Origin: Isurus oxyrinchus
Taxonomy: Eukaryota
Direction: 5' to 3'
Length of the DNA: 64,000 bases
Assembly: GCA_026770705.1 (NCBI GenBank)
Contig: JANJGN010000007.1
Location: 97,154,001-97,218,000 of the forward strand
Shown piece after piece: positions 2,430 through 54,006 of the stretch. The number at the start of each line of letters is the position of its first letter. The first letter of the stretch is position 1. Under the pieces are notes generated by a model. The model searched no databases and had not been told where the DNA came from. It saw only the letters and a list, made by a program, of their open reading frames with translations. The position numbers and the translations under genes were made by a program.

Positions 2430-2546
2430 GAAGAACGATCGCTAGCTGACAACAAGCAGACTTATGCCACTCTGGATTTCATGACTCCCAAGCAAACTGC
2501 AAAAGTTAAGCAAAAAGAAGAGACTACAGTGTATGCACAGGTACAG
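2430..2546 (+). CDS. Penultimate cytoplasmic exon of an inhibitory Ig-superfamily receptor (TYATL and VYAQV motifs)
   Basis: After AG 2428-2429, 117 nt open in phase 0: EERSLADNKQTYATLDFMTPKQTAKVKQKEETTVYAQVQ, then GTGACG donor at 2547. Aligns without gaps to the next exon. The acceptor has a weak pyrimidine tract. Confidence 0.7.
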
Positions 2547-2664
2547 GTGACGTTAAATGTGAAAATTTTTGACATGTGTATGAGAATAACTTTCAGTTTC
2601 TGAGAGTTGATTTAATATAATTGTTACTTAACTTAATTTATGTTTTTTTAAAAACATTTTGCAG

Positions 2665-2793
2665 ACCAAACATAGCTCCACTGAAAACAAACTGACATAT
2701 GCGGCGTTGATCCTAACTACTTCAAAGGAAGATGCGAAACCCAAAGCGAAAGAAACGCAACTATTATACACCACAATACAGCCAAACACCTAA
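2665..2793 (+). CDS. Terminal coding exon of the same receptor (ITIM-type LTYAAL and LLYTTI)
   Basis: ttttgcag acceptor 2663-2664, phase 0: TKHSSTENKLTYAALILTTSKEDAKPKAKETQLLYTTIQPNT, TAA 2791-2793. The preceding GT-AG intron is 118 nt. Confidence 0.8.
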   Translation, partial: TKHSSTENKLTYAALILTTSKEDAKPKAKETQLLYTTIQPNT

Positions 2794-5604
2794 ACGGGGC
2801 TGGAAAGATTCAACTGATGTTGGTGTCACAGATGTGTTTACGTTGCATATCTAATTCACTTTACCGTAGTTTATTCAGCCATTGTATTCTTACCCAGTCC
2901 TCGTGGAGCTGTCAGCTTCCACCACTCTTTTTTGGACATTCCCACTTCTGACTCCTGATATCCATACTGAGTTGAATCAAAATGTTTTATTTGCAATGTT
3001 GAAGCATCTGCTGCCATACTCTTTAATCACACCATTACATTTGAGACATGAACAGTTGCACTATTCTGCAATTCTTTTAGATGCAATCTGACGCTTTAGC
3101 ATACGCTCTTGTGATTTTGGTTGTGCAGATGAAAAAGTCGAGCATTTTATACTTGTATCCATTTATTTTCACTAATTTCTTCTCCGGCTAATTTTCACGC
3201 TTAAGGAATGAACTGTCTCTTTAATTTCTTTAATTACTTTATGTATAATTCTATTTCTTGACTGATTAACGGTTCCTGCAACCTGTTACCACTCCAGCTA
3301 TCGTTCCGTTCTTTGTTTATTGCAGATCTCCAAAGCACTCTCCATGTTGAGGAACAAGGACCCAGGCATTAACTTTCAGTTTTTTGGGTAGTTTCTGTCT
3401 GGACTCTTTGTTTCCCGTTTGTTTCATGAGTTGTATTTCATAAATTGCAGTGTTGGCATTACAACATGCCCATTGCATTCTTGCCCCCTGTCTGCAATAA
3501 CAACTGAACTTTCACCCGGTAATCCCGATAATGTCACTGTTCCAATGACATTTCCTTTAATAACTTTCGATTTTATGCTTTTTTAACTTTTGCGTTAATT
3601 ATATTTATGGGTTATTGCATTATTTTATCCTCCTCTTCAAAGCTAAGCTTCAGGCACATTGGGCACACCTGTCATATGAGACTGTGGTATTCCTGTTATC
3701 TCGTGCAGTACTTCTCTGAGTGACCCGAATAAGCAACTTTGCAGTACGTTAGCTCTCAGCAGACAAGAAAACTCAAGTGAGAAGGGGCAAGTCCAAATAA
3801 GGGAGTAGAGAACTAGAGAAATCTATGGTATTCCTGGAACAGCCAACCAAAGATACTAAGCACTGTGCAAGGTCAGGATGGACAGTCAACCACCTTTGGC
3901 TAAAGTAATGAAAACCATTATGCTCCCTGAAGGCATGTATAAGGGAGGATGATTTTTCTTAACTTGTTCTTTTCAAGGGCCATGGACAAATATGGGGAAG
4001 AGGAGTTGAAACCCCAAGAAACACGGCACAGCGAAGGGGGTGGTGAAACTGGCACTTTCATTCTTACGATGTTAAAGTTATTTGGCATGTTGCAACCACC
4101 TTGTGTTTGGAATAAAATAAAACTGTTGATAATCACATTTCCTGCCCGCTATTTACAGTACTGTTAAGTCCTGGAATATGATTGATGGTTTCTGTCATTT
4201 TGTGGACGATTGGTTTCCGAAATGCCGAGGACCCATCCGTTCTGCTTGTTCAGGGAGCACACGCCTTTAAAGCTGGAGTGCAGTATTTATTGTGCTTTCG
4301 ATTTATAGACGTTGATAGACATCGACATTTCCACTCAGAGTACTTTCTCAGAGAACATTTTGAGTCCGTGTTGAACTCAGTGCTTCCTTTAATGGGTATT
4401 GAACGTAGATGAGCACTTATTCACCTAAATAATGCGGACAACAATTGGTAATTAAGTTTCATTTTGGCAATTTTGACTTCCTGCCGTGATATTTCATGGT
4501 GCCTAGAATCAATCGAGGGCCAGTCGGTCCCAAGCCTATATTCATTGCCGCGTCGCCTCTGGGCTGTCTGGAACTCCATACGGAGAAGTTATACCTAAGT
4601 ATGCGCCGGAGGGGACTTTCAATTTCGCTTAAGAGTATGATTCTGGGATTGTGTCTGACAATAGGAAGCGCTAAGATGCACTCAATTCCACCCTCATTCT
4701 AAATTCGCCATGAGTCATTTGGAAATGCAAGACAAATCAACGAGTCAAGACGTTGGATACAAGGCTAACGTTTGGGAACCAGCTGTAGTATTGCAGCGTA
4801 AAATAGTGAAAATGAAAGTCCAACGCTCACATTTACATCTTTCCGGGTTGCAGGATCAGTCACTATGTTTTAAATGAATTTTGTCGGTGGTCAAATATAT
4901 GCACCTAACGTTCACAAATGCCTTTAACAAAATGTAAATTTGTGCAATACCAAATTTACAGTAAAACGTGCGATCCCACAGTCACTTACTAACGTGCTAT
5001 TCTGTAGAACGGACATTATAATGTTGACAGTAAGGCGCGAGGACTATTGCAACGCATCACGTGCCCGTGAACTCAGCAACTTTGAAAGAAATTATTAATA
5101 CACGACACAATGTTTGAAACAGATCCAGTAAAAATATGTTACATTATTACCTCTTAGAATCTAAATTCCCACTGAGAATTTTGCACATTGATTACAACAT
5201 GTCATTCAGTTCGTATTCTTCACAATTGGCTGTTTTTTTTTCAAATGAGAATCTGTAGGAATCATATTAATTCGCTTTAAGTTAAGAGGAAACATTAATT
5301 GATAAGTGTATTTAAAAAAAGGGAAGGAAAATGCTTTCTACCTTTACCAATGTGACACACTATAGCAGGTCTTTCTTTTTCGAAACGTGGTGTCTTTGAA
5401 ATCTTAGTTAAAGTCAGGGCCCAAAAGTTATGGTAAGCATTCGTTTGAGTCATAATGTTAAAGGTTTGTTTAGTTGTGAAAAATATGTTTTTGTTCATCT
5501 ATATTGCTTATTGTACTTTTGTAGCACATATATATTGTAGTTACATATTTTAATCGACAGCTGAAGGAAGAACAAAATGGAGGATGGTGCCGCTATTGGC
5601 TCAT

Positions 5605-5810
5605 ATTACCTGCTGAAATAGGAGCAGGAGAAGACTCTTCACTCCATCACACCTTCTCCGCCCATTTAATAAGATTATTGCTGAAACTTCTGTGGTCTTG
5701 ACAACATTTTATTTTCTATCCAACACGAATATTGAATCTCTTCTCAAGCATCGAACTCTCTAAATCAGCCTTGAATATATTCAATGATCCATCCCCTATT
5801 AATACCTGTT
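5605..5810 (-). mobile_element. CR1 LINE 3' end fragment
   Basis: gaaataggagcaggag...ctccgcccatttaataagat matches the antisense of a typical elasmobranch CR1 3' terminus. Confidence 0.5.
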
Positions 5811-6242
5811 CAAGAGGAGTTCAAATACTCACTTTGAATAATAATGTTGTAATAGGCTATTAGGATAGGAATATTGAACTCCGCAATGCATTTACCTATA
5901 TGTTTCTTAACATATAATAATAAGGTGCCATAGAAGCTAAGAGTAAATGACTGACGCAGCGGCAGGGGAGGCTTTTCGAACACTCGTGCCATAGCCGTCT
6001 ATTTGACCTAGCTTGCCTTCTAATGTCATTCGCTTGGTCCTACCCCACAGCCCTGCATATTCCGCGGTATTTGTTCTAGATTTCCAGATTTTAAAGGATA
6101 CAAATATTTATAGCGTTTTTTTTATATTCAATGTATTTGTTACAAAATGTTCAGACTGCAAATTACCTAAATGCTTCAAGACAGTACGGGAGCTTTATTG
6201 GTCGCTGAACCAGCGCATCCTGATTCATATTAAATTCTTTGC

Positions 6243-7965
6243 TTTTTTTTTATTAATCCATAGGATAGGGCTTCGCTGGCTGGACCAGCATTTATTACCC
6301 ATCCCTAGTTTACCTTGAGAAGGTGGTAATGAGCTTCCTTACCGGACCGCCGCTGCCCATGTCATGTTTGTACAATCACAGTTCTATTAGGCAGGGAGTT
6401 CCAGGACTTGACTCTGCGACAGTGAAGGAACGGCGATTTAATTCATGTCCGGATGGTGATTGACCTTGGAAGGGAACTTCCAAGCGCTGTTGTTACCATG
6501 TATCTGCTGCCCTTCTCCTTGTAGGTGGTAATGGTCGTGGGCTTAGAAGGTGCTGTCGAAGGAGACTTGGTGAATTCCTGCAGTGCAGCTTGTAGATGGC
6601 ACACATAGTTGTTAATACGTGTCAGTGATGTGGGCAGGGAATGCTGGTGGATGCTGTGGCAATCAGGCAGGCTACTTTGTCATAGATTATATAACGTTTC
6701 TTGAGTATTGTCGGGGGTGCACTCATCCAGGTCAGAGGGAATTATTTCATTACACTCCTGACCTGCGCCTTGTTGATGATGGACAGGCTTTGGGGAATCA
6801 GGATGCAGGTTGCTTGTCGAACTATGCTTAGCCTGAGAACTACTTTTGTAGCCACAATATGTATATGGTTAGTACAGTTCAGTATCTGATTAATGGTAAT
6901 CCTGAGCATGTTGATAGTGGGAGATTCAGTGATGGTAATGTCATTGAACAGCCGGGCGCGATGGTTGCACTCTCTCTTGCTGGAGATGGTCATTTCCTGA
7001 CATTTGTCTGGTGTGAATATTACATGCCACTTGTCAGCGCAAGCCTGGATATTGTCATGGTATTGCTACATTTGGACAAACTGTGCCAGTGTATGGAGAG
7101 TCGCAAATGCTGCTGAACATTGTGCAATAATCAGCGAAAATCCCCAATTCTGACCTTATGATGGAAGAAAACTCACTGATGAAGCAGCTGAAGATGTTTG
7201 GGCCAAGGGCATTCCCATGAGGAACTCTTGCAGTGATGTCCTGGAGTTGCGATAACTGCCTTGAATAATTACAACGACCTTCCTTTGTGCATACTGTTAC
7301 TCCAACCACCAGCGTTTTTCCACCGATTCCTATTGATTCCAATATTCCTCGGGTCCCTTGATGCCACACTAGGTCAAATGCTCCCTTGATGTCGAGGGCA
7401 TTCACTCACACCTCAGCTCGGAAGTTCAGCTATTTTTTCCATGTTTAAACGAAGGCTGTAATAAGGTCAGGAGCTGAGTGGTCCTGGCTGAACTCCAACT
7501 GGGTATCCGTGATAAATGTATCGCTAACCAATTTTGCTTGGTGGCATTGCTGATGACTCATTTCTATTACTTTTCTGATTATTGAGAGTGAACTGATGGG
7601 GTGGTAATTGGTTGGGTTGGATTTGTTCGCCTTTTTGTGAGCAGGACATAGCAGGACAATTTTCATCATTGCCCAGCAGATACCGGTGTTGTCACTACAC
7701 TGGAACAGCTTGGCTAGGGGTGCAGCAAGATCTAGGGCACATGCCTTCAGTGCCATTGCTCGAATGTTGTCAGGGCCAAAAGCATTCGCAGTGTCCAGTA
7801 ATTCAGCTGATTCTTTATATCACGGGGATTGTATCGAATTGGCTGAAAACTGGCGTCTGTGGTGCTCGGAATTGGCGGGGTAGGCCAAGGTGGATCATTC
7901 ACCCGGTGCTTCTGGATTAAGATTATAGCAAATGTTTCAGCCTTATCGGTTGCACAAATGTGTTG
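6243..7965 (-). mobile_element. CR1-clade LINE, RT region, cut by a deletion at about 7965
   Basis: ALDIKGAFDLVWHQG, VPHGNALGPNIFSCFI, FADYCTMF, NYHPISSLS; A-rich 3' end at about 6243-6250. Confidence 0.9.
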
Positions 7966-8589
7966 GACCACAAACAAGTCTCCTTTTTTATCCCTAATCG
8001 GCCTTACCCTTCCTTGTACCACCTTTTTATTAACAACATTTTAGTAATTTGTCTAGTTTATTCAAAATTGTGAATATGTGAACTCCGAAGTGCCAATGTG
8101 TCTGCAGCTCCAAAATAATTGGACGATCTATTTTATGCTGCCAGTCATTAATGTTCCTTTCATAACGGGTTATTCACGTTTCTCTGCCTTCAACTGTGCC
8201 TTCCATGTGCTTGCCCAATTTATAATTCTGTCCATATCCATTGTAATAAGCTATCATTCTGTCATATTCCTGCATTGTTTAACCAAGATTTTTTTTTATT
8301 TTTACATTTCACTCCGAATATCCATGCCTGATTAATCGTGAAAAGCGACTGAAGTCCAAATAATAACCTATTGTGGCCCCGCTGCACACACTCCTTCAGT
8401 CAGAATGAAAGACTGTCGCCGAAATTCCCTGCTTCCTGCCTCGCAAGCTAATGACAAACCCACGATGCCATTTCAATTATAAGCCTATGGTCTTCAAAAT
8501 GTTTTTTTTTAAAATCACTTTAATGTAATCAAATGTGAAAAGCCAGTTCACATGGTGTAAATTTAAATCTATTTTCCTGCATTGGTTCT

Positions 8590-8708
8590 TCAAATCTCAA
8601 CTTTAACCTATGCATAAACTGCACTCATTTTCTTCTCGGTGTTCTCTCCAAGCCTTGAAGAGCCACAGCAGAGTATGTCACACTATTCTTGCTTGTTCCT
8701 TGCTGAGT
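8590..8708 (-). pseudogene. Copy 1 terminal cytoplasmic exon with ITIM VTYSAV
   Basis: tttgtattcatag acceptor, phase 0: TQQGTSKNSVTYSAVALQGLERTPRRK* (TGA 8627-8625). A second motif, AVYA*VKVEI*, lies in another frame ending at 8590. Tyr at codon 12, as in the plus-strand exons. Confidence 0.75.
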
Positions 8709-9289
8709 CTATGAATACAAACATTTGGGGCTAAAGTTAAACTTATGAAATCCACTTTGCGTGTTCCTATTTACTAGCAATACATGTGACCAAAGATCTG
8801 TTAACTATATGATCCTGTTACCGTAATTATTTAATGATCATGCAGTTTACAAACATTTTGCAACTCAATACTTGAATAATAAATAAGGAAAGCTTTCAGT
8901 GTCTGTCGCATAATTTGCCTACAATGTGGCTATTCCATGTAAATAATTGAACTTAACTATTGCTTTATATTTTTCATTTTCGATCTTGTAGAAATCACTG
9001 AAACTCTGTGGTGGAAATTATTTTCATGTGAATTGTCTAGCCCATTCAGTCATATAACCAATTCAATGAGCTCTGATAGAAACGAAAAGGAATGTGTACT
9101 CATTCTGCAAATATAATGGCCCACATACAGACACAACTCTACAATATTACCATAAATGTCAAGTTATTCTGGAATAGCTGATTCATTCATGCAAAAGTGA
9201 AAATACTATCGATCCAGGAATTCTGAGATAATAATATTTCTAAAAACAAGTTGTGGAAATGAGCAACAATTGTGGGAACATTGGTCGAT

Positions 9290-10450
9290 GGACATTCAAC
9301 ACAACTTTGTTACAAACTCGTGGACTCTTACAACGACAATTATTACACGCCCTCTCACCTAGCTTTCTGCAAGGATTCTATTATAATCTTTCAGTTTCTC
9401 CCTCTCCATCGCATCTGTTCAGAAAATGCAACCTTCCACACTAGCAGGACTGTATGTTTTCATTCTTTGCTCACAGAAACTTTCCCACCCGCCATAGTTG
9501 ATTGGGTTCACCACTGTGTCAGATTCGTTTCACACGTTTTGTTCTCTCCCTTCCCCTTCCAATTGGAAGGGCAAGGTTTCCCGTTGTCCCCATCTTCCAC
9601 CTAAGAGCCTCCATATTCAACATAGCAACCTCCCTTTATTTTTCAGCTGCTGTGTGAAGCCACCAGCAAACACATTTTCCCATGTCCTCCCCTTTCAACA
9701 TTGCGAAGGGACTGTTCTGTCCACGAAGCCCTCTACATTTCTCAGCAAAAACAAATGCCCACTCCATTCCTTGCAACACTTTTCCAGTCAAGCACAGAAG
9801 ATGCATCACGTGTTCTTTTACTTCTTCCCTTTTCAACATCCAAGGTCGCAGAGCCCTCTTCCAAATGAAAAAAAAAACGATTTAATGCACTCCTTCAATT
9901 TATTAAACTGTATTCCCTGCCCACTGTGTTTTCCCCTCTACATTGTGGAGAGCAAATGTTTTTTTTGGAACATCTCTCTTCAGTCTGACCCTATGCTTCC
10001 TATGGCACACGTCCAATGTTGGTTAATGCAAGTTCGAGGAACAACACCTCATCTATTGATCCAGCATTCTACAGTACTCTGTAATAAACATTGTGTTCAA
10101 AACGTTGCACTATGACATCTCCCTCCTTGTTCGACATTTTTCCTTCTTCTGGCTAGACATTGTTTCATTTTTTTTTATCCCTTCATGTTGCATTCAGATG
10201 GCTACGATATAGCTATTCACAGCACTTCTGAACACATACTTTGTTTTATTACCATAGTTATTACCAGTCCATTTGGCTACTACATCATGAATTTGCTTTT
10301 CTATTCAATCTCACGTATCCTCCACCCTATCACAGATATTTTGCTCTTCATCTCTTCTTCCCTTACCACTATCATAAAACTCTTACAGTTCGTCATCTCT
10401 TTTGTTCCAGTGTTAGCGACCTGAAATTTTAAATGTTCCTCCTACTGTTG
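9290..10450 (+). mobile_element. Penelope-like element remnant (RT C-terminus, GIY-YIG endonuclease, terminal repeat)
   Basis: SHLAFCKDSI..FQFLPLHRICS and NCIPCPLCFPLYIVESK (GIY-YIG YCIxCxxCxxxYIGET-like); also present in copy 2. Confidence 0.8.
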
Positions 10451-11789
10451 CTGCCTGGGCTATTGAATATTTCTAGTTTGCTTTCTTTATTGTTTCATTT
10501 CAGGTTGATTTAGGTTCCCCCTACCTGTGCACATATTTTGATATCATCAGTACGTCTGGATTTTGTCATTTTCTTGGGTGCCACTGAGATTCAGGGTGAC
10601 CGAAGTTAAACTCTCCTTAGCTCCTGTATATATGATCTGAAAATAACGAGATTATATTAACAAAGGATATCCATAAGCGCGGGATAAACAATAGCTTTGT
10701 GCTGTCCAGGCGAATGCAGGACTATTCTGACATAACAAACAAAATGCAAGCCCCTTGAGTTATGCATTCAGATGAATGACAAGTAAGTGTTTATAATGCT
10801 CATTGTTGTATATTCATATTGGTTGTATTGTTAGTTGAAGCTCTCCCTCACCCCCAAAATCAGTGCACTAGCAACATCGGCTCATCTCCTGCCCAGCAAT
10901 CCCCACCACCCGGCTTCAATCTTGCACGGAGTGTAGAAATCACTCAACATCCTTGATTACTATCCTCCACTCAAACTTACTCGGGCTTGCCGGCTTTTCT
11001 CTGACATCTTCGGGCCGGGGAGCTTAAAGGATCTGGATGTGCGTGGTATTGAGCAGAGCCGTTGGTGAGACTGGGGTGCCATGGTAGATGAGTAGGTCCA
11101 GGAATGTCACGTTGGTGGTGCAGCTGAAAGTGAGCTGAGGATGGGCGTACCAAGGATTCTGGAGTGCGCTGGAGCCATGCCCAATGGGTGCCAGGAGGGA
11201 TGTTGACTGTGCGAAGGGTACCTACGAGGCTAGGGTGAAGAACTGTTCGTACAATCCTGTTGCTATAAAAACTCGTGCTTCTGAGCAGGATCCACGGGGG
11301 GACCATCAGCTTGGTTCCCCTTCTCTCCTCCGCCCCACCAAACACCACTAAAACTCCAACACGCTGGAGCCACTCAGGTGCTCCACAACATCCAGATTTC
11401 AGCATAAATGGATTCCTGGGAAGATTAGATGCCTTTGGTGCGTGCATGAGAATCCAATATTTGCCACTATTTGGGCAGCATGTTACACTTCTATTAGTTC
11501 ATAAACTGTTGTTCTGCTTTCTTGAACCTCTTCTTGTTCAGTGGCTGTCTTTATCCTCATATGTCTCGATTATTATTTGTTTCCATTACATTTACTTGTA
11601 CTCTATTTGAATTTTACCTGCATTGTTATTTTGAATTTGTAGTATAATTAATTGCTAGTATCATTCAAAAAATACTCTTTGGTGAATTGAACGCCTTTGT
11701 TGTTACTTTGGGATATCTTCTGGGAATATGGCAAATTTATCTCTAATCACCTCAGAGCTGTAAATTGTTGTGCATTGTTAATCAACCAT

Positions 11790-12720
11790 ATTACATACTC
11801 TATATTCTTTCCAACGTATTAATTTCCTTTGGCTTTCATTTATGGCGCTGAAATATGTCATTCATTCCAAAAGATGATACTTAATGAAACTCCTCGCATC
11901 ATTTTCCATACAATGCTATCAACAAATCTTTTTTTTATTTTAATCTAATGCGATTATACTGTTTTTCCTTAAATACATCAATTACAGTTGCCCCCACTAT
12001 ACGTTCTGGTCGTCAGTACGGATTGTGATCATTCTCCTGAGAAAGAATTTTTTTCAGTAATTACTTTTGATCTTCTTATTGCATATCGAATGCAAACTGT
12101 CCCTACATCGGGTCTTCCCTGAAATTGGAAACATTATTTTCTTTGTCTGCCTTCTCAAGCACTTTCCCTATCTCAAACATTTCTGACAAGCCACCACTCA
12201 GTCTCCCCTTTTATCAGAGCTCAGTTCCTGGGAGTGTTCAAACTTTCCTGAAAAGTGCATCATCTCAGTCCTTGCATTGTTCCATCCACATTATTGTACC
12301 ACCAATGGTGCCTTTATATCTTATATATAACATACCGACCCGAATGTTCACGATATGCAAATGAGCTTTAATTGATGCTCGAAAGTGTTTGTGCAATATT
12401 TCTGCTTTTGAATTTGATCCCCCTAGAAATGAATTTTGTTCTTGTGGTTGTTTTTTTTTTATGGCTTACTATCCTCAATCATTATTCTAGTGATTTCTGG
12501 ATTGATATCACCAGATTCTGGATTTATTGTATTTTCAGTTTCATATTTGAACAATATTCCCATTATTGCTTCTACCACTGAAATTAAACTATTTTCTATA
12601 TTTTCCTGGTCATTTTTCTTTCTTTTTGCCAGCTTTCCACCATCGCTCACTTTATTAATCATATTTTGTCATATGTATGGAATAAATGCACAGATGCAAT
12701 CCTCCAGACCCTGTGCATGT
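11790..12720 (-). mobile_element. Degenerate CR1 LINE 3' ORF2 fragment
   Basis: Minus strand aaattctttctcaggagaatgatcacaatc corresponds to the CR1 FFSQRVV..WN region. Confidence 0.6.
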
Positions 12721-13664
12721 CCTCTCTGAATGTGAGGAGCATATGAATTATCAATTTGCTTTGTAGCTTAAATGTCCTCACTTAAATATGGAAAGAAATC
12801 TGGTCTTCTGATGTGATGCCCAGTGCGTTCGCCTGCATTTAAGTGCAGAGCGAATTTCATTATTAGCGATTTGTTGTGTGTCAGTGGCATTACCTTGTGT
12901 CAGGCCCGTGCATTCCTAGGCAGACCTAATTCTATAGCCATTTATCTTGTGCCTTTCATGCGGCTGTGCAATTCTACTTATTTTAAATTAATTGATAATT
13001 GGATTTTATACATTGTGTTTGCTTTCCTATTTTTTGGTAATATTTTACTGAGGAATTATTTTTTTCTTCCAATTCGTTTTCCACCAATGTTCTGGATATG
13101 TGTTCAGTGTATGTTATTTCCTTTATTTTCAATTCTGCTCTTATTTCGTTACTCATCCTTAATGTCGCACAGCTGGGCAGAATGTTCTTGGATAGTTTCT
13201 TTCTCATATAATTTAAGTGCCTGTTTTAGGGTTAAGTACTTGTGCCATTGACGGTTGCTTCTGCATTACAATGTAACCTAAGGACTATCTTCCCTAATTG
13301 CTAACTCTTCTAATCCAGCCAGCATCAGCAGGCTGTACTTCTCTCTATGGAACACCTCTAAATACTTCCTTTCATTTCAAGCGTTATCTAAATGGAAGTT
13401 CGTGTGTGTATAAAGATTAGATGACGGAATGGACCGGGGTTAATTATGTCTTTCAAAAGGTGTAAAGCCACGGAGTCTAAATTAATTAAGTGATAAAGGG
13501 ACATAACTTAAGTCATGGGTGGATGTTTTGGGTGTCATGGTTCCTATTTCATGTTGTCTAATTGCATCGTGCAATCATACAGGGAATTTGTGCAGAATTA
13601 ATGTTAAAAATCGCAGGGTTCTTTAAAGTGCCCACCTATTTCTAAGTATGAAATACTTGTTTAT

Positions 13665-13709
13665 CTTTTCGTTGTGCTGATTACGTTCTTTTGGGTTTGC
13701 TTAATATCT
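13665..13709 (-). pseudogene. Copy 1 juxtamembrane exon (dead)
   Basis: Homologous to 46229-46272, but acceptor AG>CG, +1 insertion and donor GT>AT. Confidence 0.65.
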
Positions 13710-14345
13710 CGAAAGGAGAAGTAAATGAGCAAATAGATGGGACAATTCCTTTGAAACCGCATATTAAAATGCGACAACCGGTACCAGGGTGGTGGGTCCT
13801 CCAGAAGACAGAAGCCTGGTTACCAAGCCCACATGCAATTCTTCATCTGCTTTGTTCAATAATACTTACAATGGTCGGTCACCTAATGTTGCGTTTTTAA
13901 GCATGTGCGTAAAGAAAAAAAAATAATAAACCCTGGAAAATGAATGATTTAAAATCCAGGCGGTACTAACAGGTCGCAATTTTAGGATATTTGCTCTGTT
14001 CAGCGTAAAACTTAAAATGGACTGTTCAAGATTAACTTCGCCGCTAACCAGTGTGCAGGGACTACTCAAGCTATCAACATACGAATTTGGTACTGGGAGC
14101 AATGCACCCGTATGGTAAAATGAATGTGCTAACTGCACTATTACACATGACAATGAGCACTGTTCTAATGAATGAACTCACCAGATGCAGATATCAGAAA
14201 CTGATATACCGCCATTAAATTGGAGCAATTATTAGCGTGCAATATATTTGTGGATGCTGTGCTTAGTATTGACACTTTGCAAGCACTGAATAACATCTGA
14301 ACAGTTCCTCAAATAGCGACTAAATAAATAGAGGCTGGTACTTAG

Positions 14346-14438
14346 CGCTTTGAATCACAATGGAAATTGTGATCAGGAGAAGTACCAATCTTCCACCAAG
14401 ACGACCGGAAATCATTGGATAAGAAAGGTCATCGTAGC
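14346..14438 (-). pseudogene. Copy 1 transmembrane exon
   Basis: tctcgcag acceptor, 93 nt, phase 1-1: GYDDLSYPMISGRLGGRLVLLLITISIVIQS. Donor reads CTAAGT where copy 2 has GTAAGT. Confidence 0.8.
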
Positions 14439-15119
14439 CTGCGAGATTAATCTGCATATATATACGTAATTTGCAAAATATATGCAGCGTTAGAAGATAA
14501 TGATAATTTCCAAAAAGTTCCAAAAGCTTCTTTTTCCTTTTGGGACACGTGTTGTATATGTAGTAAACGAACAAAAATATTGCCAATGAGGATACTGGGT
14601 TCGATACAAAGTAAATACAGGAACACATTCCTGCGAAGTTTCTTTGTTAGATCAAAGCAAGCACAGTGACATAAAAATCATATGATGGTCCACTAACAGA
14701 TAAAGTGAAAACAGGGGAATATTCCCTGTGATCACTCAGAATCGGACTGCCACTCCCAATCCTTGTTGCCCCACCTGATGATTCTGAACAAGATTCCTGA
14801 GATAGCAATGTACTGCAGGCTTTGGAAATCTGAAATACGTTTTATTTAAAGAACGGTGGAAGTACTCGCCAGTTCTGACAGTATCTTCAAAGAAAGACAC
14901 ATTTAATGTATTAGCCCTATGAACTTTCGTCAGTTTTACTTATTAGATTTGCTCATGTTGTTCTATTTGTTTTGTTATTCTGTTACAGGAAGCACATGAA
15001 ATATATCACTGATTCAGAAAAAAATTACCCAGCAGCTTTAAGTTGGACATCCACGAGACTCTGGGGAGAATATGTAGAATCATAACTACTCAACTAGAAT
15101 ATCTAAACTCATGGCCAGG

Positions 15120-16660
15120 CAGATCGGTCACTCCACCAATATCATTTTGCCTTGGTATCAACCTAGTTCAATGGGGAATGCAGGAGGGCAGCACTAATTA
15201 TAACGAAATATGATGCGCCAACCTGGTGAAAACAAAGCACAGAACATCATGCATGCTAAACACCAGAGGGAGCATGCGATAAACGTAACTCAGTAAACTC
15301 ACAATTAATTAATCAGGTCAAATTATGCAGCCTTGTCAACTTCATGCAATAATTGTTGTGGAGAAATAAACTACCAATTATACGAGTCGACTCAACCAAC
15401 ATCCCCACCCTCAACAGCCTGCACACTAATACTCAGTTTTGGTTCCATCAGGAAGACTCGAGTCCAGAAGCCATTACAGTATTAGTCGAACATGGAAAAG
15501 TAGCTCAATTACAGAGGTAAGACCAGAGAGACTGTCAACGAACTCAAGGTAACATTTCATCCAGTATGGTATCAAGGAGCCCTGCCTAATTTGAAGTTAA
15601 TGATGATAAGGGGGAAAAAAACCCTGCACTGTTTGCATTGATACCTCACGCAAAGTCGTGTTTAATGGAGGCCAATGTTCTCAACTGAAACACTTATCTA
15701 CAAGAGGTTTTTAGCCGAGACCAAAGCATAGTTAATTTATTCTTGAATGACCTTCGGTCCATAATTTGGTCAGAAGGGGGATGCTAGTTGAATATTTTAT
15801 ATAATTCGCAACCATTAGTAGCTCCTTAGGTACTGAATCAGTCAAAAGCCGCATGCTGAAGTAAAACTGGACAACATTCAGACTCATGCTGTTAGGGGCA
15901 CATAACATTCGTGCCACAGAAGCACCATCTCCAATAAGAACGAATTTAACTATCTCCAAATGACATTCAACAGCATTACCTTTGCTGAAACCAGAACCAT
16001 CAACATCGTGGGCTTTGCATTTGACCAGGTGGTCAACGCCGGCCACATACATATTCTAACAACAAAGCAGGTTAGCCTCTGGGAATTCTGCGGTCAATTG
16101 CACACCTCTGGGCTCCACAAAACCTGTTCACCATTTACAAGGCATAGATCAGTTGTCAATCACACTTGTCATGCCTATTGAGGACACATCGTTAAGGGCG
16201 GCATATGGCGAATTTCTGACCAAATTGAAAAATCTTCCCTTTCTTAAGATTATATTAAATATCCAAGATATACTGCCCTCATAAAAAATGCAGCTGATAA
16301 TGGGATATTTTCTAGCTGCTAGGATGAGTTAATCTCCAAAAACAGTGAAGAAGCCCCCCTCTGCCCACAACCTTCAACATCAACTCTGTCCACCAACAAC
16401 ACGCAGTGGACAGCAGCATTTACTATCAATGTGATACTTTGACGCAATTAGCCAAACCTCTTTCGAAAACACCTTCAAAATCCATAATTCTACCACCTCG
16501 GAAAGCAAGAGAAGCATACGCAAAGGAACATCGCCACATGCAAGCGCCCTGCCAATCCATACACAATTATGAAGTGCATCTACAAAGCCTTTATTTCATT
16601 ATCCTCGGTGAATATACTGGAACTCCCTTTCTAGCGGCACTAGAGCCTTATCTACACCAC
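15120..16660 (+). mobile_element. Degenerate CR1-clade LINE (same family as 6243-7965)
   Basis: aaccatcaacatcgtggg..tttgaccagg and the downstream thumb and 3' region match the sense strand of that family; also present at 47690-49230. Confidence 0.7.
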
Positions 16661-17732: not shown

Positions 17733-17969
17733 AGACCATCTCGCTCTCCACAGGCTCTGTCTTAATTATATTGCTCGAAACCTCATAGAGTACTGTCATG
17801 CTCTGCTGTTTGATTTGTTTCAAAGCTTCACCTGTTTCTTACTCATTTTTATACCAAGTGATTTTCAGATGATCCAGGAAAGGTGCAGCCGTTATACACA
17901 CAAGAGTCAGAGGAACTGATGAACGGCCCGCCGACCGTTTGATGACTATCTGGAAAGCTGTCAGAGTGA
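17733..17969 (-). pseudogene. Copy 1 C1-set Ig exon, truncated
   Basis: ttttgtag acceptor: VTLTAFQIVIKRSAGRSSVPLTLVCITAAPFLDHLKITWYKNE*ETGEALKQIKQQSMTVLYEVSSNIIKTEPVESEM. Stop at 17841-17839; the second Cys and donor are lost in a deletion equal to 50299-50453 of copy 2. Confidence 0.88.
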
Positions 17970-20508: not shown

Positions 20509-20613
20509 CTGTCAAAAAAAAAATGATTAAACTCACCATTAATGAAACAAACAAAGAATTTGACAGCCTAGCTGACAAAAATTGAGATAGATAAAAGGAA
20601 CACAAATACGCAC

Positions 20614-20665
20614 CTAAAAAGGAGCAGACAGTGATGCAAAAACTAATGAAGAACTTTATATTCAT
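20614..20665 (-). pseudogene. Copy 1 leader (signal peptide) exon
   Basis: ATG 20665: MNIKFFISFCITVCSFL-G, phase-1 GTGCGT donor, 105-nt intron to the V exon. Confidence 0.75.
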
Positions 20666-41200: not shown

Positions 41201-41321
41201 TCAAATCTCAGCTTTACCCTGCGCATTAACTGCACTCATTTTCTTCTCGGTGTTCTCCCCAAGGCTCGAAGAGCCACAACAGTGTACGTTACATTTTTTT
41301 CTCACTTATTCCTTGCTTAGT
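41201..41321 (-). pseudogene. Copy 2 terminal cytoplasmic exon with ITIM VTYTVV
   Basis: tttgtatttacag acceptor. With two A removed from the run at 41294-41300 it reads TKQGISEKNVTYTVVALRALGRTPRRK*. The second motif has decayed to AVNAQG. Confidence 0.72.
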
Positions 41322-43050: not shown

Positions 43051-46000
43051 AGCCTATTGAATATTTCTAGTATGCTTTCTTTATTGTATTAGTTCAGGTT
43101 GATTCATGTTCCCCCCTACCTGTGCATATATTGTGGTATCTTCAAAACGTCTGGATTTGTCATTTTCTGGGTGCCAGTGAGATTCATGGTTATATAAATT
43201 AAACTCTCCTGAGCTCCTGTATATATGATCTGAAACTAACGAGATTTTATTGACGAAGGATATCCATATGCATGGGATAAGAAATGGCTTGGCACAGTCC
43301 AGGCAAAGGCAGGACTCTTCTGATATAATGAACCAAAGGCACGCTCATTCAGTTATGCGTTCAGCTGAATGACAGGTAAGTGTTTATAATGCTCATTATT
43401 ATATGTTCATATTGGTTTTACTTTTAATTGAAGCTCCCCTTCACCCCCAACATCAGTTGTACTAGCAACACCGGCTTATCTCTTGCCCCACCAGCACAAC
43501 ACCCCTACCCCTCATTCCCACCAACTGGCTTTGTTCTTGCACGGAGTATAGATGCCACTCAACGTCCTCCATTACCATCCTCCACTCCACTTTGCTCGGG
43601 CTTGCCAGCTTTCCTCTGACATTGCAGGACTGGGGAGACTAAAGCTGCTAGAGATGCGAGGTATTGAGCGGAGCCGGTGGTGAGAGTGGGTTGCCACGGC
43701 AGATGAGTAGACCCGGAATTGTCAGAATGGTGGTGTGGCTGAAAGTGAGCTTAGGATGGGCGCATCAGGCGTTCTGGAGTGTGCTGTGGCCATGCCCAGT
43801 AGGTGCCAGGAGGTATGTTCAGTGTACCACGGGTACCTACGATGCCAGAATGAAGAACAGTTTGTACATTCCTGTCGCTTTAAAGACTCGTGCTCCTGAA
43901 CAGGATCACCGATGGGACCATCAGCTTGGTCCCCTTTCACTCTTCCATCCCCCAAGCCTGCAGCACGCTGGAGCCACTCAGGTGCTCCACAACTTTTGGA
44001 TTTCAGCATAAGTGGGATCCCGGGAAGATCAGGTACATTTGGTGCCCGCACGAGAAGCAAATATATGCTGCTATTTGGGACTGTGTAATAGGCATCTATT
44101 AGTTTATAAAATGCTGTACTACATTTTTGGCAGCTCTTGTTCAATCTCTGCCTTAATCCTCATATGTCTCCATTATTATTTGTCTCCGTTACATTTACTT
44201 GTATTCTGTTTGATTTTTACCTGCATTACTATGCTGAATTTGTAGTATAATTATTTGCTAGTGTCATTCATAAAATACTATTTGGTGAATTGACCGCCTT
44301 TGCTGTTATTTTGGGAATTCTTCTGGGAATATAGCAAATTTATATCTAATCACCTCAGAGCAGGAACTTGTTATTCATTGTTGATCAATCATATTATATG
44401 CTCATTTTTATTTCCAGTGTATTAATTTGGCTTTCATTTACTGCGCTGAAATATGTCATTCATTCCGAAATATCATGCTAATGAACCTCCTCGCATCATT
44501 TTACATATAATGCTATCAACAAATCAGCTATTCATTTATACTCGATTATACTTCTTTTTCCTTAATTACATCAATTGCAGTTACCCCAAATATACGTTCT
44601 GGTTGCGAGTTCAGATTGTGACCATTCTCCGGAGAAAGGATTTTTTTTCAGGAATTACTTTTGATCTTCTTATTGCCTATTGAATAGAAACGATCCCTAA
44701 ATTGGGTCTTCCCTGAAATTGGAAACATTGTTTTCTGTGTCTGCCTTCTCAAACTCTTTCCCTATCTCAAACATCTCCGACAAGCTACCACTCAGTCTGC
44801 TCTTTTATCCGAACTGAGTTGCTGGGAGTGTTCATTTTTTTTCCTGAAAAGTGTAACATCTCAGTCCTTTCATTGTTTCATGCACATTATTGCACCTCCA
44901 ATAATGCCTTTCTATCCTCCATATAACATACAGACTCGAATGTTCACGGTGTGCAAATGAGTTTCAATTAATGCTCTAAAACGTTTGTGCAATATTTCTG
45001 TTTTTCAATTTGATCCCCCTAGAAAGGACATCATCTTGTTGTTGTGGTTATTGTTTTATGGCAATCATTATCTTAGTGATTTCTGGATTGGTACCCCCAG
45101 ATTCTGGATTAATTGTATTTTCAGTTTCATATTTGAATACGATTCCCATATTTACTTCTATCTCTGAAATTAAACTATTTTCTATCGTTTTCTCGTCATT
45201 TTTCATATTTTTTCTTTTTCCAGAGTTCTACCGTCACTCACTTTATTGAACATATTTTGTTATATATATGGAATAAATGCACAGATGCAATCCTCCAGAC
45301 CAGGTGCACGTCCTTTCTGAATGTGAGAAGCATATCAATTATCAATTCGCTTTGTAGCCTAAATGTCCACAATTAAATCGGAAAAAAAACCTCGTCTTCT
45401 GATGTGATACCCACTACGTTCGCTTACCTTTAAGTGCAGAGGGAAGTTCATTATTTGCTATTTGGTGTATGTCAGTGTCATTAGCTTGCGTCAGCCCGGT
45501 GCATTCCTAGGCTGTTCTAATTCTACAGCCATTGTGTCCTTCCTGCGGCTGTGCAATTCTATTTATTTTAAATTAATTGATAATTGGATTTTTTACATTG
45601 TGTTTGCTTTCCTATTTTTTGCTAATTTTTTTTTCTTCCAATTAATTTTCCACTAGTGTTCTGGATATGGGTTTCGTGTATTTTATTTCCTTTGTTTTCA
45701 GTTCTGCTCTTGTTTTGTTACTCAAACGTAATGTCGCACTGCTGGGCAGAATGTTCTCGGATAGTTTCTTTTTCATATAATTTAAGTGTCTGTTTAAGGG
45801 TTAAGCATTTGTGCTTTTGACGGTTGCTTCTACATTACAAGGAAACAAGATGACTATCTTAACTACAATGCTAACTCTTCTAATCCAGCCAAAATCAGCA
45901 GGCTGTATTTCTCTCTATGGAACATCTCAAAATAATTTGTTTCATTTCAAGTGTTATCTAAATTGAAGTTCGTGTGTGTATAAAGATTACATAACGGAAT

Positions 46001-46228: not shown

Positions 46229-46272
46229 CTGTTCATTGCGCTGATTACGTTCTTTTGGTTTTCTGAATATCC
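46229..46272 (-). pseudogene. Copy 2 basic juxtamembrane exon
   Basis: Strong acceptor ttcctcatttacttctcctttag, 44 nt GIFRKPKERNQRNEQ, CAG|GTAAAT donor. Phase 1 to 0 links the TM exon to the ITIM exon. Confidence 0.78.
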
Positions 46273-46892: not shown

Positions 46893-46985
46893 CGCTTCGA
46901 ATCACAGTGGAAATTGCAATCGGGATAGGTACCAATCCTCCACCAAGACAAACGAATATCATTAGATAAGAAAGGTCATCGTAGC
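46893..46985 (-). pseudogene. Copy 2 transmembrane exon
   Basis: 93 nt GYDDLSYLMIFVCLGGGLVPIPIAISTVIRS, perfect GTAAGT donor, acceptor AG>CG at 46987. Confidence 0.82.
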
Positions 46986-50384: not shown

Positions 50385-50690
50385 CCAAACTGAAGAAGGT
50401 CTAGTTGATATTGGTTGGCATCCGAAGAGAGATGTGAGACACCTGACACGTGAAAACTGTCTCGCTCTCCACAGGCTGTGTCTCAGTTAGATTACTCGAA
50501 ACCTCATACAATCCTGTCGTGTTCTGCTGCTTGATTTCTTCCATTGCCTCTCCAAGTTCTGATCCATTTTTATACCAAGTGATGTTCAGATGCTCCGGGA
50601 AATACGCAGCTGTTACACACACAAGAGTCAGAGGAACTGATGAGTGGCCCTCCGACCGTTTGATGACTATCTGGAGAGGTGTTGGAGGGA
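50385..50690 (-). pseudogene. Copy 2 C1-set Ig exon
   Basis: 306 nt, phase 1-1: VPPTPLQIVIKRSEGHSSVPLTLVCVTAAYFPEHLNITWYKNGSELGEAMEEIKQQNTTGLYEVSSNLTETQPVESETVFTCQVSHISLRMPTNIN*TFFSL. C1 hallmarks LVC..YFP..I.W, Y..SS.L and FTCQVSH; TAG at 50403-50401. Confidence 0.93.
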
Positions 50691-51519
50691 CTACAAAAAA
50701 AATGTTTGTTTTTAAGTCCAGTCTTAGGTACCAGAACATAAGGCAAATTCTATCGCTGGGAAACCCAGAAAGACATCATAAAACCACAGCGAACTTTCAC
50801 AACCTTATTATGTTTTTTCCTGAGTATCTGTATGGCCTCGTACAACTAAAGGCCCCTCCTGAGACCGCAAAAAGCTGCCACCCAAAACATTGTATCCAGA
50901 TATTATCAATTGGGTCGAAATCGCATTCAAAGATGTAAAACTTATTTAATGTAAATTCGATGGATGCTCAATGTGATGTTTGTGTAAATAATGTGTTATC
51001 TTTACCCTGACTGTTCTACAGCCAGATGTAGATAAAAGCCCCCGACTAAACTCCTGATTAATCTGCTTGTTAATAGTGAGAACTAGATTCTGCGCAAATC
51101 ATTGCCAGCTATCGTCGGGACAGAGCAATGACTGCACTCTCCATTAATTGGCTGCTTGTGTGCGTTTTTTTTTTAAAGAGAACAACTTGTGAAATTTGAG
51201 TTGAAGGATTAGAGTTTTGCATATTCTTTCTTTATAGGTTACATTCACATTTTAGAGTTATCGTGATTCAAGTTAAAGCTTTGCTTTTTCTTTGAACCTG
51301 GCACTCAGATAAAGGTTAACTGTCATTTCGCAACATGTAGAAAAGTGATACCCTGTAAGGTAAACGTTACAAATGATCTATCTTGGAAACCAATGCTGTC
51401 TGCAAATACAAATGCACATTGTTTTCAATTTAATGCATGGAACGCAACGACTGAGTCATATCACGGCTTTTTATGGAAAGCAAACATACATGGAGGTCAA
51501 ATGTATTTGCATTATCAAT

Positions 51520-52083
51520 ACAAAAACAAAAACAGAATTACCTGGAAAAACTCAGCAGGTCTGGCAGCATCGGCGGAGAAGAAAAGATTTGACGTTTCGA
51601 GTCCTCATGACCCTTCGACAGAACTTGAGTTCGAATCCAAGAAAGAGTTGAAATATAAGCTGGTTTAATGTGTGTGTGTGGGGGGCGGAGAGAGAGAGAG
51701 AGAGAGGTGGAGTGGGGGTGTGGTTGTAGGGACAAACAAGCAGTGATAGAAGCAGATCATCAAAAGATGTCAACAACTTGTTGACATATTTTGATGATCT
51801 GCTTATATCACTGCTTGTTTGTCCCTACAACCACACCCCCACTCCACCTCTCTCTCTCTCTCTCTCTCTCTCCGCACCCCACACACACACCTTAAACCAG
51901 CTTATATTTCAACTCTTTCTTGAACTCCAACTCAAGTTCTGTTGAAGGGTCATGAGGACTCGAAACAGCAACTCTTTTCTTCTCCACCGATGCTGCCCTG
52001 CCAGACCTGCTGAGTTTTTCCAGGTAATTCTGTTTTTGTTTTTGTTTTGGATTTGCAGCATCCGCAGTTTTTTTGTTTTTATC
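51520..52083. mobile_element. Palindromic Penelope terminal-repeat insertion with 14-bp TSD
   Basis: Inverted arms 51520-51776 and 51778-52045 with a 1-nt spacer; TSD tttgcattatcaat at 51506-51519 and 52084-52097; absent at about 18775 in copy 1. Confidence 0.9.
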
Positions 52084-53458
52084 TTTGCATTATCAATGCT
52101 TATTTGCACATCTGAGTGCTTGGCTTATTTAGTACCTTTTATAGTTCAGTAAAAAATCTAATTTATATATAAAGGTTATAACGCAGCTTCCTATAAGTTA
52201 TATTTCATTCAATTTACTTCTTGAAGCTCCGAATGCTAGTTGAAAACATAATTTCATTCATTCAATACTCATTATTGACAGAATTTCTCAAATAAAGGCG
52301 AAAGTTTATGTAGAAACAATCGCTAATCAATGACGTATTTCGAATCTGTTCATGACAAATATTGAAGTGAAAAATGGGTGTTCAAATTAAATCATCCAGA
52401 ATGAGGGGAAGTGCTCTTTTCTAGCTGGAGTTATACTTTGAATTAATGATAAGGGTTGTGCTGTTGCATGACAATCATCTCAGCACTGGCAGATCTCATC
52501 AAACTTCCACTGTTCTGCCGCTTAGGTGTAGCCACATTCAGCTGCTTCATCAATGAACATCCTTCCATCCAAAGTCAGCATTTGTCTTTGGATCAGTTCC
52601 ATTCACAATTCATGTTCTCTGAAAAATGATAAGCAACATTCGTGCGAATAGGGTGACAATTACTTGCCATCTCGCGTAAGTGTCTATACTTCTACACGCG
52701 ACGTGAATGGCATTACAATCAACAATCTGGATTTCAGAATTAGGAGTTTACACTTTCTGACTTCTTAATACGGTAATAAAATGTAGCGAGCAAATAAGGA
52801 TTCTGGCGTGAGTGACTCACCATCCAACTCTACGAATAGTTTGCATCACCTCCGCTGCGCAGTTCAGGGAAGTGAGAGAACTATCTCCACTTACCTGGAT
52901 GATTTCAGCTGTATCAAATTTCAACAAGAGATCAAACACCGAAAGTGAAGTATTCTGATTGTCTGATACCCCAGTCATGACTCGAAACATTAAATCTGAA
53001 CGCCAACAGAGCTAACGTTTCGAATGCCTATTCTCAACAAAGTACAATGCAGCAATACGTCAAAACTACTGCGACTACACGTTCCAGCTCCTGCACCGCC
53101 AATACATAGAAGTACATGTGTAGAAAGCACCTGGGAATATGCAGCCGTTCAGACAATAACTCAAACATCATCCTGATGTATGCAGCTATCGCAATTCGTC
53201 TTGTCGTGGTTGGGTCAAAATCCAGGAACTAACTACTTAATAGCATTGTGGCATTATTTTCAATGAACGAGATGCAAGGCTTCGTGAAAGCGACTTACCA
53301 CCACTTCGAAACAGCAAATAGAGATGGGAAATAAACGCTGCACCTGTCATTAAAGCTCAAAATTATTGAAATTATTGAATGAATCAATAAAGACCCATTT
53401 TCTTAATCAAAGAGCAAATAATCGCTCCGAAATTATACAACGTATGCGGTCACCAAGG

Positions 53459-53460
<2 letters not shown>

Positions 53461-53493
<33 letters not shown>

Positions 53494-53540
53494 GTGGGGA
53501 GGCGGGGGGGGGGGGTGGTGGTGGGGGGGGGGGGGGGTGG
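53461..53540. repeat. (GT)n microsatellite plus G-runs next to the V exon donor
   Basis: About 15 GT units followed by long G tracts; short at the paralogous site 20150-20170. Confidence 0.9.
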
Positions 53541-53570
53541 TGTCTGATTACGCCTCTCGCTGACACTCAC

Positions 53571-53882
53571 CATATACAACTATTTTAGTGCCGGTTCCGT
53601 TTACAACCACTGGATATGTAACCCTGCAGCAATAGAGACCGGCATCCTCGTATCTCACGTCCTCCAATTTTAAGGCAGCTCCACCTTGATTTAGGTAATA
53701 AAGCCAGATTCTACTGTCCAAACTTTCCTCCAAAATCCCTTCCCTCCTGTCTCTCTACCAATGCACTTTCGCTGGCCTCTTCTCTAAAAAGATGGGATAC
53801 GTGCAGTAAAGAGTAACTGTGTCGCCTCTCGTCACTGCGAACTCGGCAGCTTCTGTCCCGGTCGATGAAGGTTGACGAGCGC
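53571..53882 (-). pseudogene. Copy 2 V-set exon with germline J-like motif
   Basis: 312 nt, phase 1-1: GARQPSSTGTEAAEFAVTRGDTVTLYCTYPIFLEKRPAKVHW*RDRREGILEESLDSRIWLYYLNQGGAALKLEDVRYEDAGLYCCRVTYPVVVNGTGTKIVVY. B-strand Cys, C-strand Trp, DxGxYxC and GxGT are present. TAG at 53757-53755 (CAG in copy 1); GTGAGT donor. Confidence 0.93.
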
Positions 53883-53963
53883 CTGTCAAAAAAAGATTAA
53901 ACTCAACATTTAGCAGCCTAGCTGACAAAAATTCAGAGAGAGAAAAGAAACACAAATACACAC

Positions 53964-54006
53964 CGAAAAAGGAGCGGAAAGTAATGCAAAAACTAATTAT
54001 ATTCAT
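53964..54006 (-). pseudogene. Copy 2 leader exon
   Basis: ATG 54006: MNIISFCITFRSFF-G, GTGTGT donor, 81-nt intron; 9-nt in-frame deletion relative to copy 1. Confidence 0.72.

Follow-up and report, generated by a model that had tools for sequence, protein, structure and literature searches.

Two receptor gene copies in a tandem duplication

The window analysed here is a 64,000-nucleotide stretch of AT-rich vertebrate DNA without N (C7:97154001-97218000 of the 4.98-Gb Isurus oxyrinchus genome), and it contains two minus-strand gene copies of an immunoglobulin superfamily (IgSF) receptor type, copy A and copy B, one in each unit of a tandem duplication. Copy A extends over approximately 20776-8625 and copy B over approximately 54117-41236, and unit 2 has an extra 4.7-kb insertion at 35822-40578 relative to unit 1. 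The units are as follows:

5889-24703, no strand assigned: duplication unit 1, carrying copy A (self-blastn)
33779-58034, no strand assigned: duplication unit 2, carrying copy B (self-blastn, 81-84% identity to unit 1)

Gene models were obtained by tblastn of a Heptranchias perlo protein, XP_067853506.1, against the window, after which the splice sites were read directly. The V domain was matched at E 1.9e-36 and the C1 domain at E 7.6e-34, and leader, transmembrane and module matches were found in both copies. Each copy has seven exons, encoding a leader, a V domain, a single C1-set domain between V and the transmembrane segment, the transmembrane segment itself, a basic juxtamembrane stretch, a bi-tyrosine module and the last part of the tail. 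The leader ends in phase 1, the V, C1 and transmembrane exons are 1-1, the juxtamembrane exon is 1-0, the module exon is 0-0 and the last exon starts in phase 0.

Copy B
54066-54117, minus strand: leader, MFGVLLHCMTSLPLSCA plus 1 nt, donor GTAAAT, phase 1 (aligned to the copy A exon)
53571-53882, minus strand: V exon, ending in VNGTGTKIVVYG before the donor gtgagt, phase 1-1 (tblastn E 1.9e-36)
50385-50690, minus strand: C1-set exon, donor G/GTACGG, phase 1-1 (Pfam PF07654, E 4.9e-15)
46893-46985, minus strand: transmembrane exon, YDDLSYLMIFVCLGGGLVPIPIAISTVIRS (tblastn to residues 225-255 of XP_067853506.1; three-copy alignment)
46229-46272, minus strand: basic juxtamembrane exon, GIFRKPKERNQRNEQ, intact, phase 1-0
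43120-43229, minus strand: bi-tyrosine module exon, IIYTGAQESLIYITMNLTGTQKM..RRFEDTTIYAQ, phase 0-0 (tblastn to residues 274-292 of XP_067853506.1)
41236-41321, minus strand: last exon, reading TKQGISEKKM and a stop in the acceptor frame; the motif VTYTVVALRALGRTPRRK and its stop lie 2 nt out of frame

Copy A
20725-20776, minus strand: leader, MFRALLHCMIILPLSCT, matching residues 1-17 of XP_067853506.1 (tblastn)
20199-20508, minus strand: V exon, ending in VNGSGTKLFAYG before the donor gtgggt (homology and direct reading)
about 17739-17969, minus strand: C1 remnant (homology to copy B and direct reading)
14346-14438, minus strand: transmembrane exon, YDDLSYPMISGRLGGRLVLLLITISIVIQS, with two Arg (tblastn and three-copy alignment)
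13665-13709, minus strand: juxtamembrane remnant, acceptor AG>CG, +1 insertion, donor GT>AT
10525-10636, minus strand: module remnant, +1 insertion, both tyrosines lost (LTSVTL, ICAQ)
8625-8708, minus strand: last exon, open, TQQGTSKNSVTYSAVALQGLERTPRRK and a stop (direct reading and tblastn)

A sequence-only reading of the same DNA had described two minus-strand genes with V(J), C1, transmembrane and tail exons. Such exons do exist, within the tandem duplication, but both copies turn out to be pseudogenes. The reported V exon ending in NG(T/S)GT, followed by one C1-set exon, is found in both copies, where the endings read NGTGTKIVVYG and NGSGTKLFAYG and the J-like residues lie directly before the splice donor. 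Likewise, the concordant phases (1,1-1,1-1,1-1,1-0,0) agree with our reading of the splice sites, and, as had been noted, no heptamer-12/23-nonamer resembling a recombination signal sequence (RSS) lies within approximately 1 kb of either V exon. The leader had been placed wrongly, at 54006, which is inside the leader intron, while the true leaders lie about 110 bp upstream, at 54117-54066 in copy B and, correspondingly, at 20776-20725 in copy A. The transmembrane segment had been called uncharged, which holds for copy B but not for copy A with its two Arg. As for the tail, the basic juxtamembrane and last exons had been recognised correctly, but the bi-tyrosine exon (43229-43120 in copy B, 10636-10525 in copy A) had been missed.

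Independent decay of the two copies

Lesions were read directly from the sequence and polarised with a third local copy that lies downstream of the window. In copy B, the leader exon, its start codon and its donor are all intact. The V exon, of which the second half still gives a V-set match (Pfam, E 2e-5), has an in-frame TGG>TAG at 53757-53755, corresponding to the second W of VHWW in relatives, and the third copy keeps TGG at this position. Another in-frame TAG, derived from TAY, interrupts the G strand of C1 at 50403-50401 (NIN-stop-TFFSLG, compared with NISYTFYSL in XP_067853506.1). The transmembrane exon keeps its donor, GTAAGT, while its acceptor, at 46987-46986, has changed from CAG to CCG. 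Further downstream, a 1-bp deletion (-1 shift) places the two halves of the module exon in different frames, and a 2-bp insertion (+2 shift) precedes VTYTVV in the last exon, so that the remnants of the tail, LIYITM/TIYAQ and VTYTVV, are out of frame or degraded.

In copy A, the leader donor has changed from GT to GC, and the V exon has lost a single base at two places (near 20397/20396 and 20266/20265), each loss shifting its frame. The C1 remnant contains a TAA at 17841-17839 (WYKNE followed by the stop), and a 155-bp deletion has taken away the G strand and the donor along with the second Cys. The transmembrane donor has changed from GT to CT, and of the tail motifs VTYSAV is kept. Altogether there are at least five lesions in copy B and at least nine in copy A, with none common to both. 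Because the lesions differ between the copies, each must have arisen after the duplication. Neither copy retains an open frame with intact splice sites, both being broken by stops, frameshifts, deletion and lost splice sites.

Very probably, then, the window holds two tandem, independently decayed pseudogenes of a cartilaginous-fish family of non-rearranging IgSF receptors. One could argue instead that copy A, copy B or both still work as an inhibitory receptor and that the lesions are assembly errors, rare alleles or defects bypassed by alternative splicing, given that the last exon of copy A and the juxtamembrane and leader exons of copy B are intact, that the exon phases are concordant, and that four of the frameshifts fall within short stretches of A or C, where long-read assembly is prone to error. 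However, the lesions also include plain substitutions (two TAGs, one TAA and four splice dinucleotides) as well as the 155-bp deletion, and short-read contigs of run X1 reproduce both TAGs of copy B, with 0 differences from the assembly across them. A contig from a related species (run X10), 95% identical over 50394-51078, points the same way, in that its C1 ortholog has acquired a further stop at codon 76 (GAG>TAG) and a Ser in place of the second Cys (Cys81>Ser), and of the nine codons that differ, eight are non-synonymous or nonsense changes. The two TAGs of copy B are themselves not readable in that species, one falling at the contig end and the other in a part without coverage. Divergence between copies A and B is neutral-like, with exons (83-87% identity) no better kept than introns (85-87%) and a pN/pS ratio (non-synonymous to synonymous differences) of 0.82. 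The RNA check that the sequence-only reading had suggested gave weak negative evidence: in two small RNA-like runs the contigs fell only on interspersed repeats, copy B having zero depth on its leader, V and C1 exons, and no run recorded as RNA contained the C1 exon. On this evidence a working receptor is very unlikely. The preserved leader exon, start codon and leader donor of copy B could also suggest that the copies are pseudogenes still transcribed for regulation or as decoys, for instance as a truncated secreted peptide of the leader and half a V domain or as a non-coding RNA. We find this scarcely credible, as the same exons have no depth in the RNA-like runs, the divergence is neutral-like, and translation of copy B would end at about 60 residues with the V fold incomplete.

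Some points do weigh against pseudogenes. Run X1 may derive from the same individual as the assembly, so any single lesion could be a segregating null allele; the frameshifts sit in short homopolymers and are read from the assembly; and missing reads are weak evidence, given that each RNA-like run comprises just 49-151 million letters and comes from an unknown tissue.

A family expanded in Isurus and found across cartilaginous fishes

A search of the genome with the C1 exon of copy B returned 56 matches at E <= 1e-5, all but two of them on C7 and the remaining two on C21. Open frames were found for 41 of the 54 matches on C7, and at least 54 C1 exons is thus a lower bound for the size of the family in this genome. 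The corresponding V search gave 42 matches, all on C7. Nearly all matches on C7 belong to two clusters, at 96.4-97.6 Mb and 108.7-110.0 Mb, and a single further locus is found near 114.8 Mb; the window (97.15-97.22 Mb) falls within the first cluster.

Outside this genome, a HMMER scan of 1.84 billion representative proteins with the C1 of copy B brought up many proteins of 220-410 aa with one V and one C1 domain. The best full-length match was XP_067853506.1 (P0011) from Heptranchias perlo, 368 aa long and automatically named 'tyrosine-protein phosphatase non-receptor type substrate 1-like', and other members include XP_007902825 from Callorhinchus milii and GCC18889.1 from Chiloscyllium punctatum. 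The sequence-only reading had proposed a search of chondrichthyan genomes. A profile of 13 members retrieved 74 chondrichthyan proteins at E <= 1e-54, from about 17 species, in genera that include Callorhinchus, Heptranchias, Heterodontus, Scyliorhinus, Mustelus, Carcharodon, Cetorhinus, Chiloscyllium, Mobula, Hypanus, Hemitrygon, Pristis and Leucoraja. After the family, scores drop to about 1e-9 with teleost proteins, and the reach of the search beyond that point is limited by the word index. Homologs are thus present in chimaera, sharks and rays.

The alignment of the family gives a V consensus of ...YWWK.GE..FL...DSRKRF...DSGVYYC...NGTGS.L.V and a C1 consensus of VPPTPL...C.TA.FYPE.L.ITWYKNG...GLYEVSS...VYTC.VSH..., and, after an uncharged transmembrane segment, a tail of one to three modules of the form TKQGT..NK.TYAAL.L..SKKT.KPK....TVYAQ. 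The Heptranchias protein has the same exon order and phases as the window copies (identity 63% in V and 56-60% in C1) and shares with them VHWWRD..FLEES.DSRI, NGTGTK.VVY, VPPTPL, TWYKNG and CQVSH in the ectodomain, YDDL.Y..I.GCLG.GL in the transmembrane segment and the tail module TKQGT..NK.TYAAL. The two differ in that entries of the XP_067853506.1 type are open gene models whereas the window copies are pseudogenes, and in that the tail of XP_067853506.1 has three modules, while the window copies keep a single full module exon and a last module that is shortened.

The automatic names given to members of the family are SIRP-alpha-like, SIRP-beta-like, immunoglobulin (Ig) lambda-like, NCR3LG1-like and tapasin-related-like, but also CD276 homolog, T-cell receptor (TCR)-beta-like and class II beta-like of the major histocompatibility complex (MHC). 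The family is mis-annotated in public records. It had been suggested that the family was undescribed or mis-annotated, and the inconsistent names bear out the latter, but public databases already include over 70 predicted proteins of the family, from about 17 species of cartilaginous fish. In the literature searched, a limited collection, we found no paper dedicated to a chondrichthyan V-C1 family.

Relation to SIRP and other V-C families

The data support the view that the family is a single-C1, SIRP-like variant, that is, a non-rearranging, germline-joined V(J)-C1-transmembrane type with tails carrying motifs of the immunoreceptor tyrosine-based inhibitory (ITIM) type. These latter features had been proposed from the window, and the chondrichthyan homologs agree with them. 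On the C1 profile, family members score 86-154 bits and the best outsiders at most 58 bits, these outsiders being electric ray and skate proteins with multiple C1 domains (58 bits or less, while the family starts at 86), a coelacanth 'SIRP-beta-1-like' and a lungfish 'SIRP-alpha-like' protein, with SIRP-like proteins reaching at most 53 bits. In both SIRP and the shark family the V exon encodes the J-like motif and a C1-set domain comes after V; in SIRP there are two C1-set domains between V and the transmembrane segment, in the shark family one, and, unlike SIRP, the shark family has grown to dozens of copies. Mammalian SIRP-alpha tails typically carry paired xTYAxL / xxYAxx tyrosine modules, and this SIRP-type feature of paired ITIM-type tyrosines recurs in the shark family as one to three xTYAxL...xxYAQ modules. 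The sequence-only reading had set the family apart from SIRP-alpha (V-C1-C1); this is correct as to the single C1, but the distance is not great, as coelacanth and lungfish SIRP-like proteins are the closest named relatives outside cartilaginous fish in the HMMER scan.

Comparisons with solved and predicted structures were less discriminating. The best-scoring chains of solved structures are SIRP-gamma (2.4e-13), B7-H6 (1e-12) and SIRP-alpha (3.7e-12), with Ig chains close behind, and searches of the PDB with V-only and C1-only profiles gave no discrimination, being dominated by multi-domain Ig chains. The AlphaFold model of the ectodomain of XP_067853506.1 is a confident one, with a mean per-residue confidence (pLDDT) of 89.7. 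When it was searched with Foldseek, V-C proteins of Swiss-Prot were all matched at E 5e-13 to 4e-11, with overlapping values for PD-L1, NCR3LG1, CADM, CD276, TAPBPL, BTN and SIRP. These near-equal fold matches explain the scatter of automatic names.

Is the family, then, not SIRP-like but a counterpart of B7/B7-H6 (NCR3LG1), butyrophilin or tapasin-related proteins, or of PRARP/VJC1? The automatic names NCR3LG1-like, CD276 homolog and tapasin-related-like would fit such an origin, as would the B7-H6 match, about equal to that of SIRP-gamma, and the overlap of the Foldseek values of many V-C families with those of SIRP. PRARP/VJC1 genes, which reportedly occur from bony fish to birds, are reported to have the same V(J)-C1-transmembrane architecture and not to rearrange. 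B7-H6, B7 and butyrophilin share the V-C ectodomain with the shark family at similar sequence and fold E-values; in contrast to them, the V domain of the family ends in an N-G-T/S-G-T/S J-like motif and its tail consists of SIRP-type bi-tyrosine modules. The template modelling scores (TM-scores) to the XP_067853506.1 model are highest for SIRP (rat SIRP-alpha 0.79, human SIRP-beta-1 0.77), compared with 0.67-0.72 for the B7 type. Moreover, the top named outsiders of the full HMMER scan are the SIRP-like proteins of coelacanth and lungfish, and the alignment of a Callorhinchus member to coelacanth SIRP is colinear through V and the first C1 (30% identity, 209 residues, E 2e-18), including the J motif with its GNGS-L-V pattern (GNGSRLIV compared with GNGSDLSV). 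Taking these together with the paired tail modules, we consider a non-SIRP origin improbable. The SIRP-like placement derives from scores, a pairwise alignment and TM-scores, and to be set against it is that a database search with the tail alone returned nothing but the query.

The family can also be told apart from other receptors with a V(J) domain. NKp30 (NCR3) has one V(J) domain, lacks a C domain and is MHC-linked, whereas the shark family has a C1 exon, as had been pointed out, and sits off the chromosome with MHC class I. In rearranging Ig and TCR genes an RSS lies beside a J-less V, while in the window the V exons end in J-like residues and a splice donor, without RSS. The UrIg and UrIg2 genes are non-rearranging shark VJ-C genes that encode from several up to eleven C domains and map to the MHC or to the Ig/TCR complex (PMC12227049). 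The germline-joined VJ exon, the split leader, C1-type C domains and the occurrence in cartilaginous fish are common to UrIg/UrIg2 and the present family; unlike them, the present family has one C1, an ITIM tail and a location on a chromosome without MHC class I genes.

A linkage to the MHC had been raised by the sequence-only reading, and neither linkage to MHC class I nor synteny of the SIRPA type, the latter judged from two markers, is supported. MHC class I exons were found on C21, with one weak match on C16 and none on C7, and a Pfam search for MHC class II beta gave no match anywhere in the genome and hence has no bearing on linkage. For the SIRPA neighbours SNPH and PDYN (chr20p13), syntaphilin-family matches lie on C5 and C12 and opioid-precursor matches on C5, with none of either on C7; these are two markers of unproven orthology. 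The class I alpha1/alpha2 exons on C21 comprise an intact pair at 66.13 Mb and, at 94-100 Mb, a large cluster in which part of the exons are degenerate (matches at 93.9-100.3 Mb).

Neighbouring copies, plus-strand tail exons and repeats

We also examined the flanks of the window, over 80 kb on the upstream side and 60 kb on the downstream side. A minus-strand family member with V, C1, transmembrane and tail exons lies at -45.0 to -38.5 kb relative to the window; its V is intact, and its C1 exon has one in-frame TAG (ITN-stop-ANT). The third copy mentioned above, of the same subtype as copies A and B and likewise on the minus strand, is located about 46 kb downstream (C7:97261831-97264716, window +107.8 to +110.7 kb). 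Its leader and V are intact (VHWWRD...NGTSTKLVVYG/gtgagt), the V being 68% identical to that of XP_067853506.1, but its C1 has been lost by a 3.4-kb deletion and homology stops within the transmembrane exon. In this copy, splicing of V to the transmembrane exon would still preserve the frame (phase 1-1), and the layout would then be V-only and NKp30-like, but with no tail exons after it. A plus-strand C1 exon of the same subtype, at window +91.4 kb, is 58% identical to the C1 of copy B and contains a TAA and a frameshift.

Among the matches listed, the next-best V in the genome to the XP_067853506.1 type has just 48% identity. This, together with the partial third copy and the broken C1 nearby, indicates that the local XP_067853506.1-type subfamily appears degenerate in the Isurus oxyrinchus genome. 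Copies A and B are relics of birth-and-death turnover in the cluster.

At the start of the window lie two further exons of the family type, both on the plus strand:

2430-2540, plus strand: tail module exon, open, EERSLADNKQTYATLDFMTPKQTAKVKQKEETTVYAQ (NKQTYATLDF...TTVYAQ)
2665-2793, plus strand: terminal tail exon, open, TKHSSTENKLTYAALILTTSKEDAKPKAKETQLLYTTIQPNT and a stop (NKLTYAAL...LLYTTI, then the stop)

The sequence-only reading had assigned such exons to a convergent plus-strand gene. The related tail exons are there, but no plus-strand V, C1 or transmembrane exon was found in the 38.5 kb upstream of them, and they therefore look orphaned, probably as a 3' gene fragment. Minus-strand 'exons' at 2800-2430 were rejected, the coding sense there being that of the plus strand. 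Transmembrane candidates called by hydropathy only, such as those at 2794 and 15289 on the minus strand, were likewise false, and the true exon was found through homology to XP_067853506.1.

Several repeats accompany the duplication. Degenerate RVT_1 open reading frames of the long interspersed nuclear element (LINE) type (Pfam, E 4e-7 and 5e-5) were seen at 7058-7405, 34908-35240 and 39632-40033, all on the minus strand, the last of them within the 4.7-kb insertion by which unit 2 differs from unit 1. Directly 3' of the V donor of copy B, at 53440-53560, there is a long poly-C/CCA tract with a (CA)n microsatellite, and here the depth of short-read contigs falls to 1.6-9. The intron between V and C1 of copy B contains an extremely abundant interspersed repeat (51452-52091, also 52476-52603), which is present in RNA-like runs too and for which DNA runs from two species give a summed contig depth of millions. 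It occurs here as an inverted pair, 51523-51777 and 51780-52042, flanking a GA/CT microsatellite.

Discussion

In summary, the observations of the sequence-only reading are partly confirmed and its interpretation is partly supported. An intact member of the family would begin with a split leader and a V domain whose exon also encodes a J-like G-x-G-T, followed by one C1-set domain, an uncharged transmembrane segment, a basic juxtamembrane stretch and a tail of one to three exon-encoded bi-tyrosine modules, roughly xTYAxLxL...KPK...TVYAQ. As far as these motifs tell, it would be a type I receptor engaging a ligand through its V domain. Once phosphorylated, the tail tyrosines, an ITIM-like S/V/L-x-Y-x-x-L/V followed some 20-25 residues on by x-x-Y-A-Q, would recruit SHP-type phosphatases through their SH2 domains, and this recruitment would damp cell activation much as in SIRP-alpha. 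Judging from such motifs, intact members would probably act like SIRP-alpha. Copies A and B cannot make such a receptor, every exon class having been hit by stops, frameshifts, deletions or lost splice sites. They are routine birth-and-death products of an immune gene cluster and are not novel in themselves.

The family as a whole deserves the notice of comparative immunologists, as it comprises single-C1 VJ-C1 receptors with SIRP-type inhibitory tails, found from chimaeras to rays and strongly expanded, for which public annotation offers eight or more unrelated names. A more far-reaching view, which we put forward tentatively and regard as possible though unlikely, is that the family is an undescribed, chondrichthyan-wide sister lineage of SIRP that has the minimal VJ-C1-transmembrane form of the proposed pre-RAG ancestor and has expanded, outside the MHC, to dozens of genes grouped in two clusters of megabase size. 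If true, it would be a candidate shark system of natural killer or myeloid inhibitory receptors. Phylogeny and expression could show whether SIRPs started as V-C1 receptors, and the family would join UrIg/UrIg2 and PRARP as the third non-rearranging VJ-C1 set in the debate on the origin of antigen receptors.

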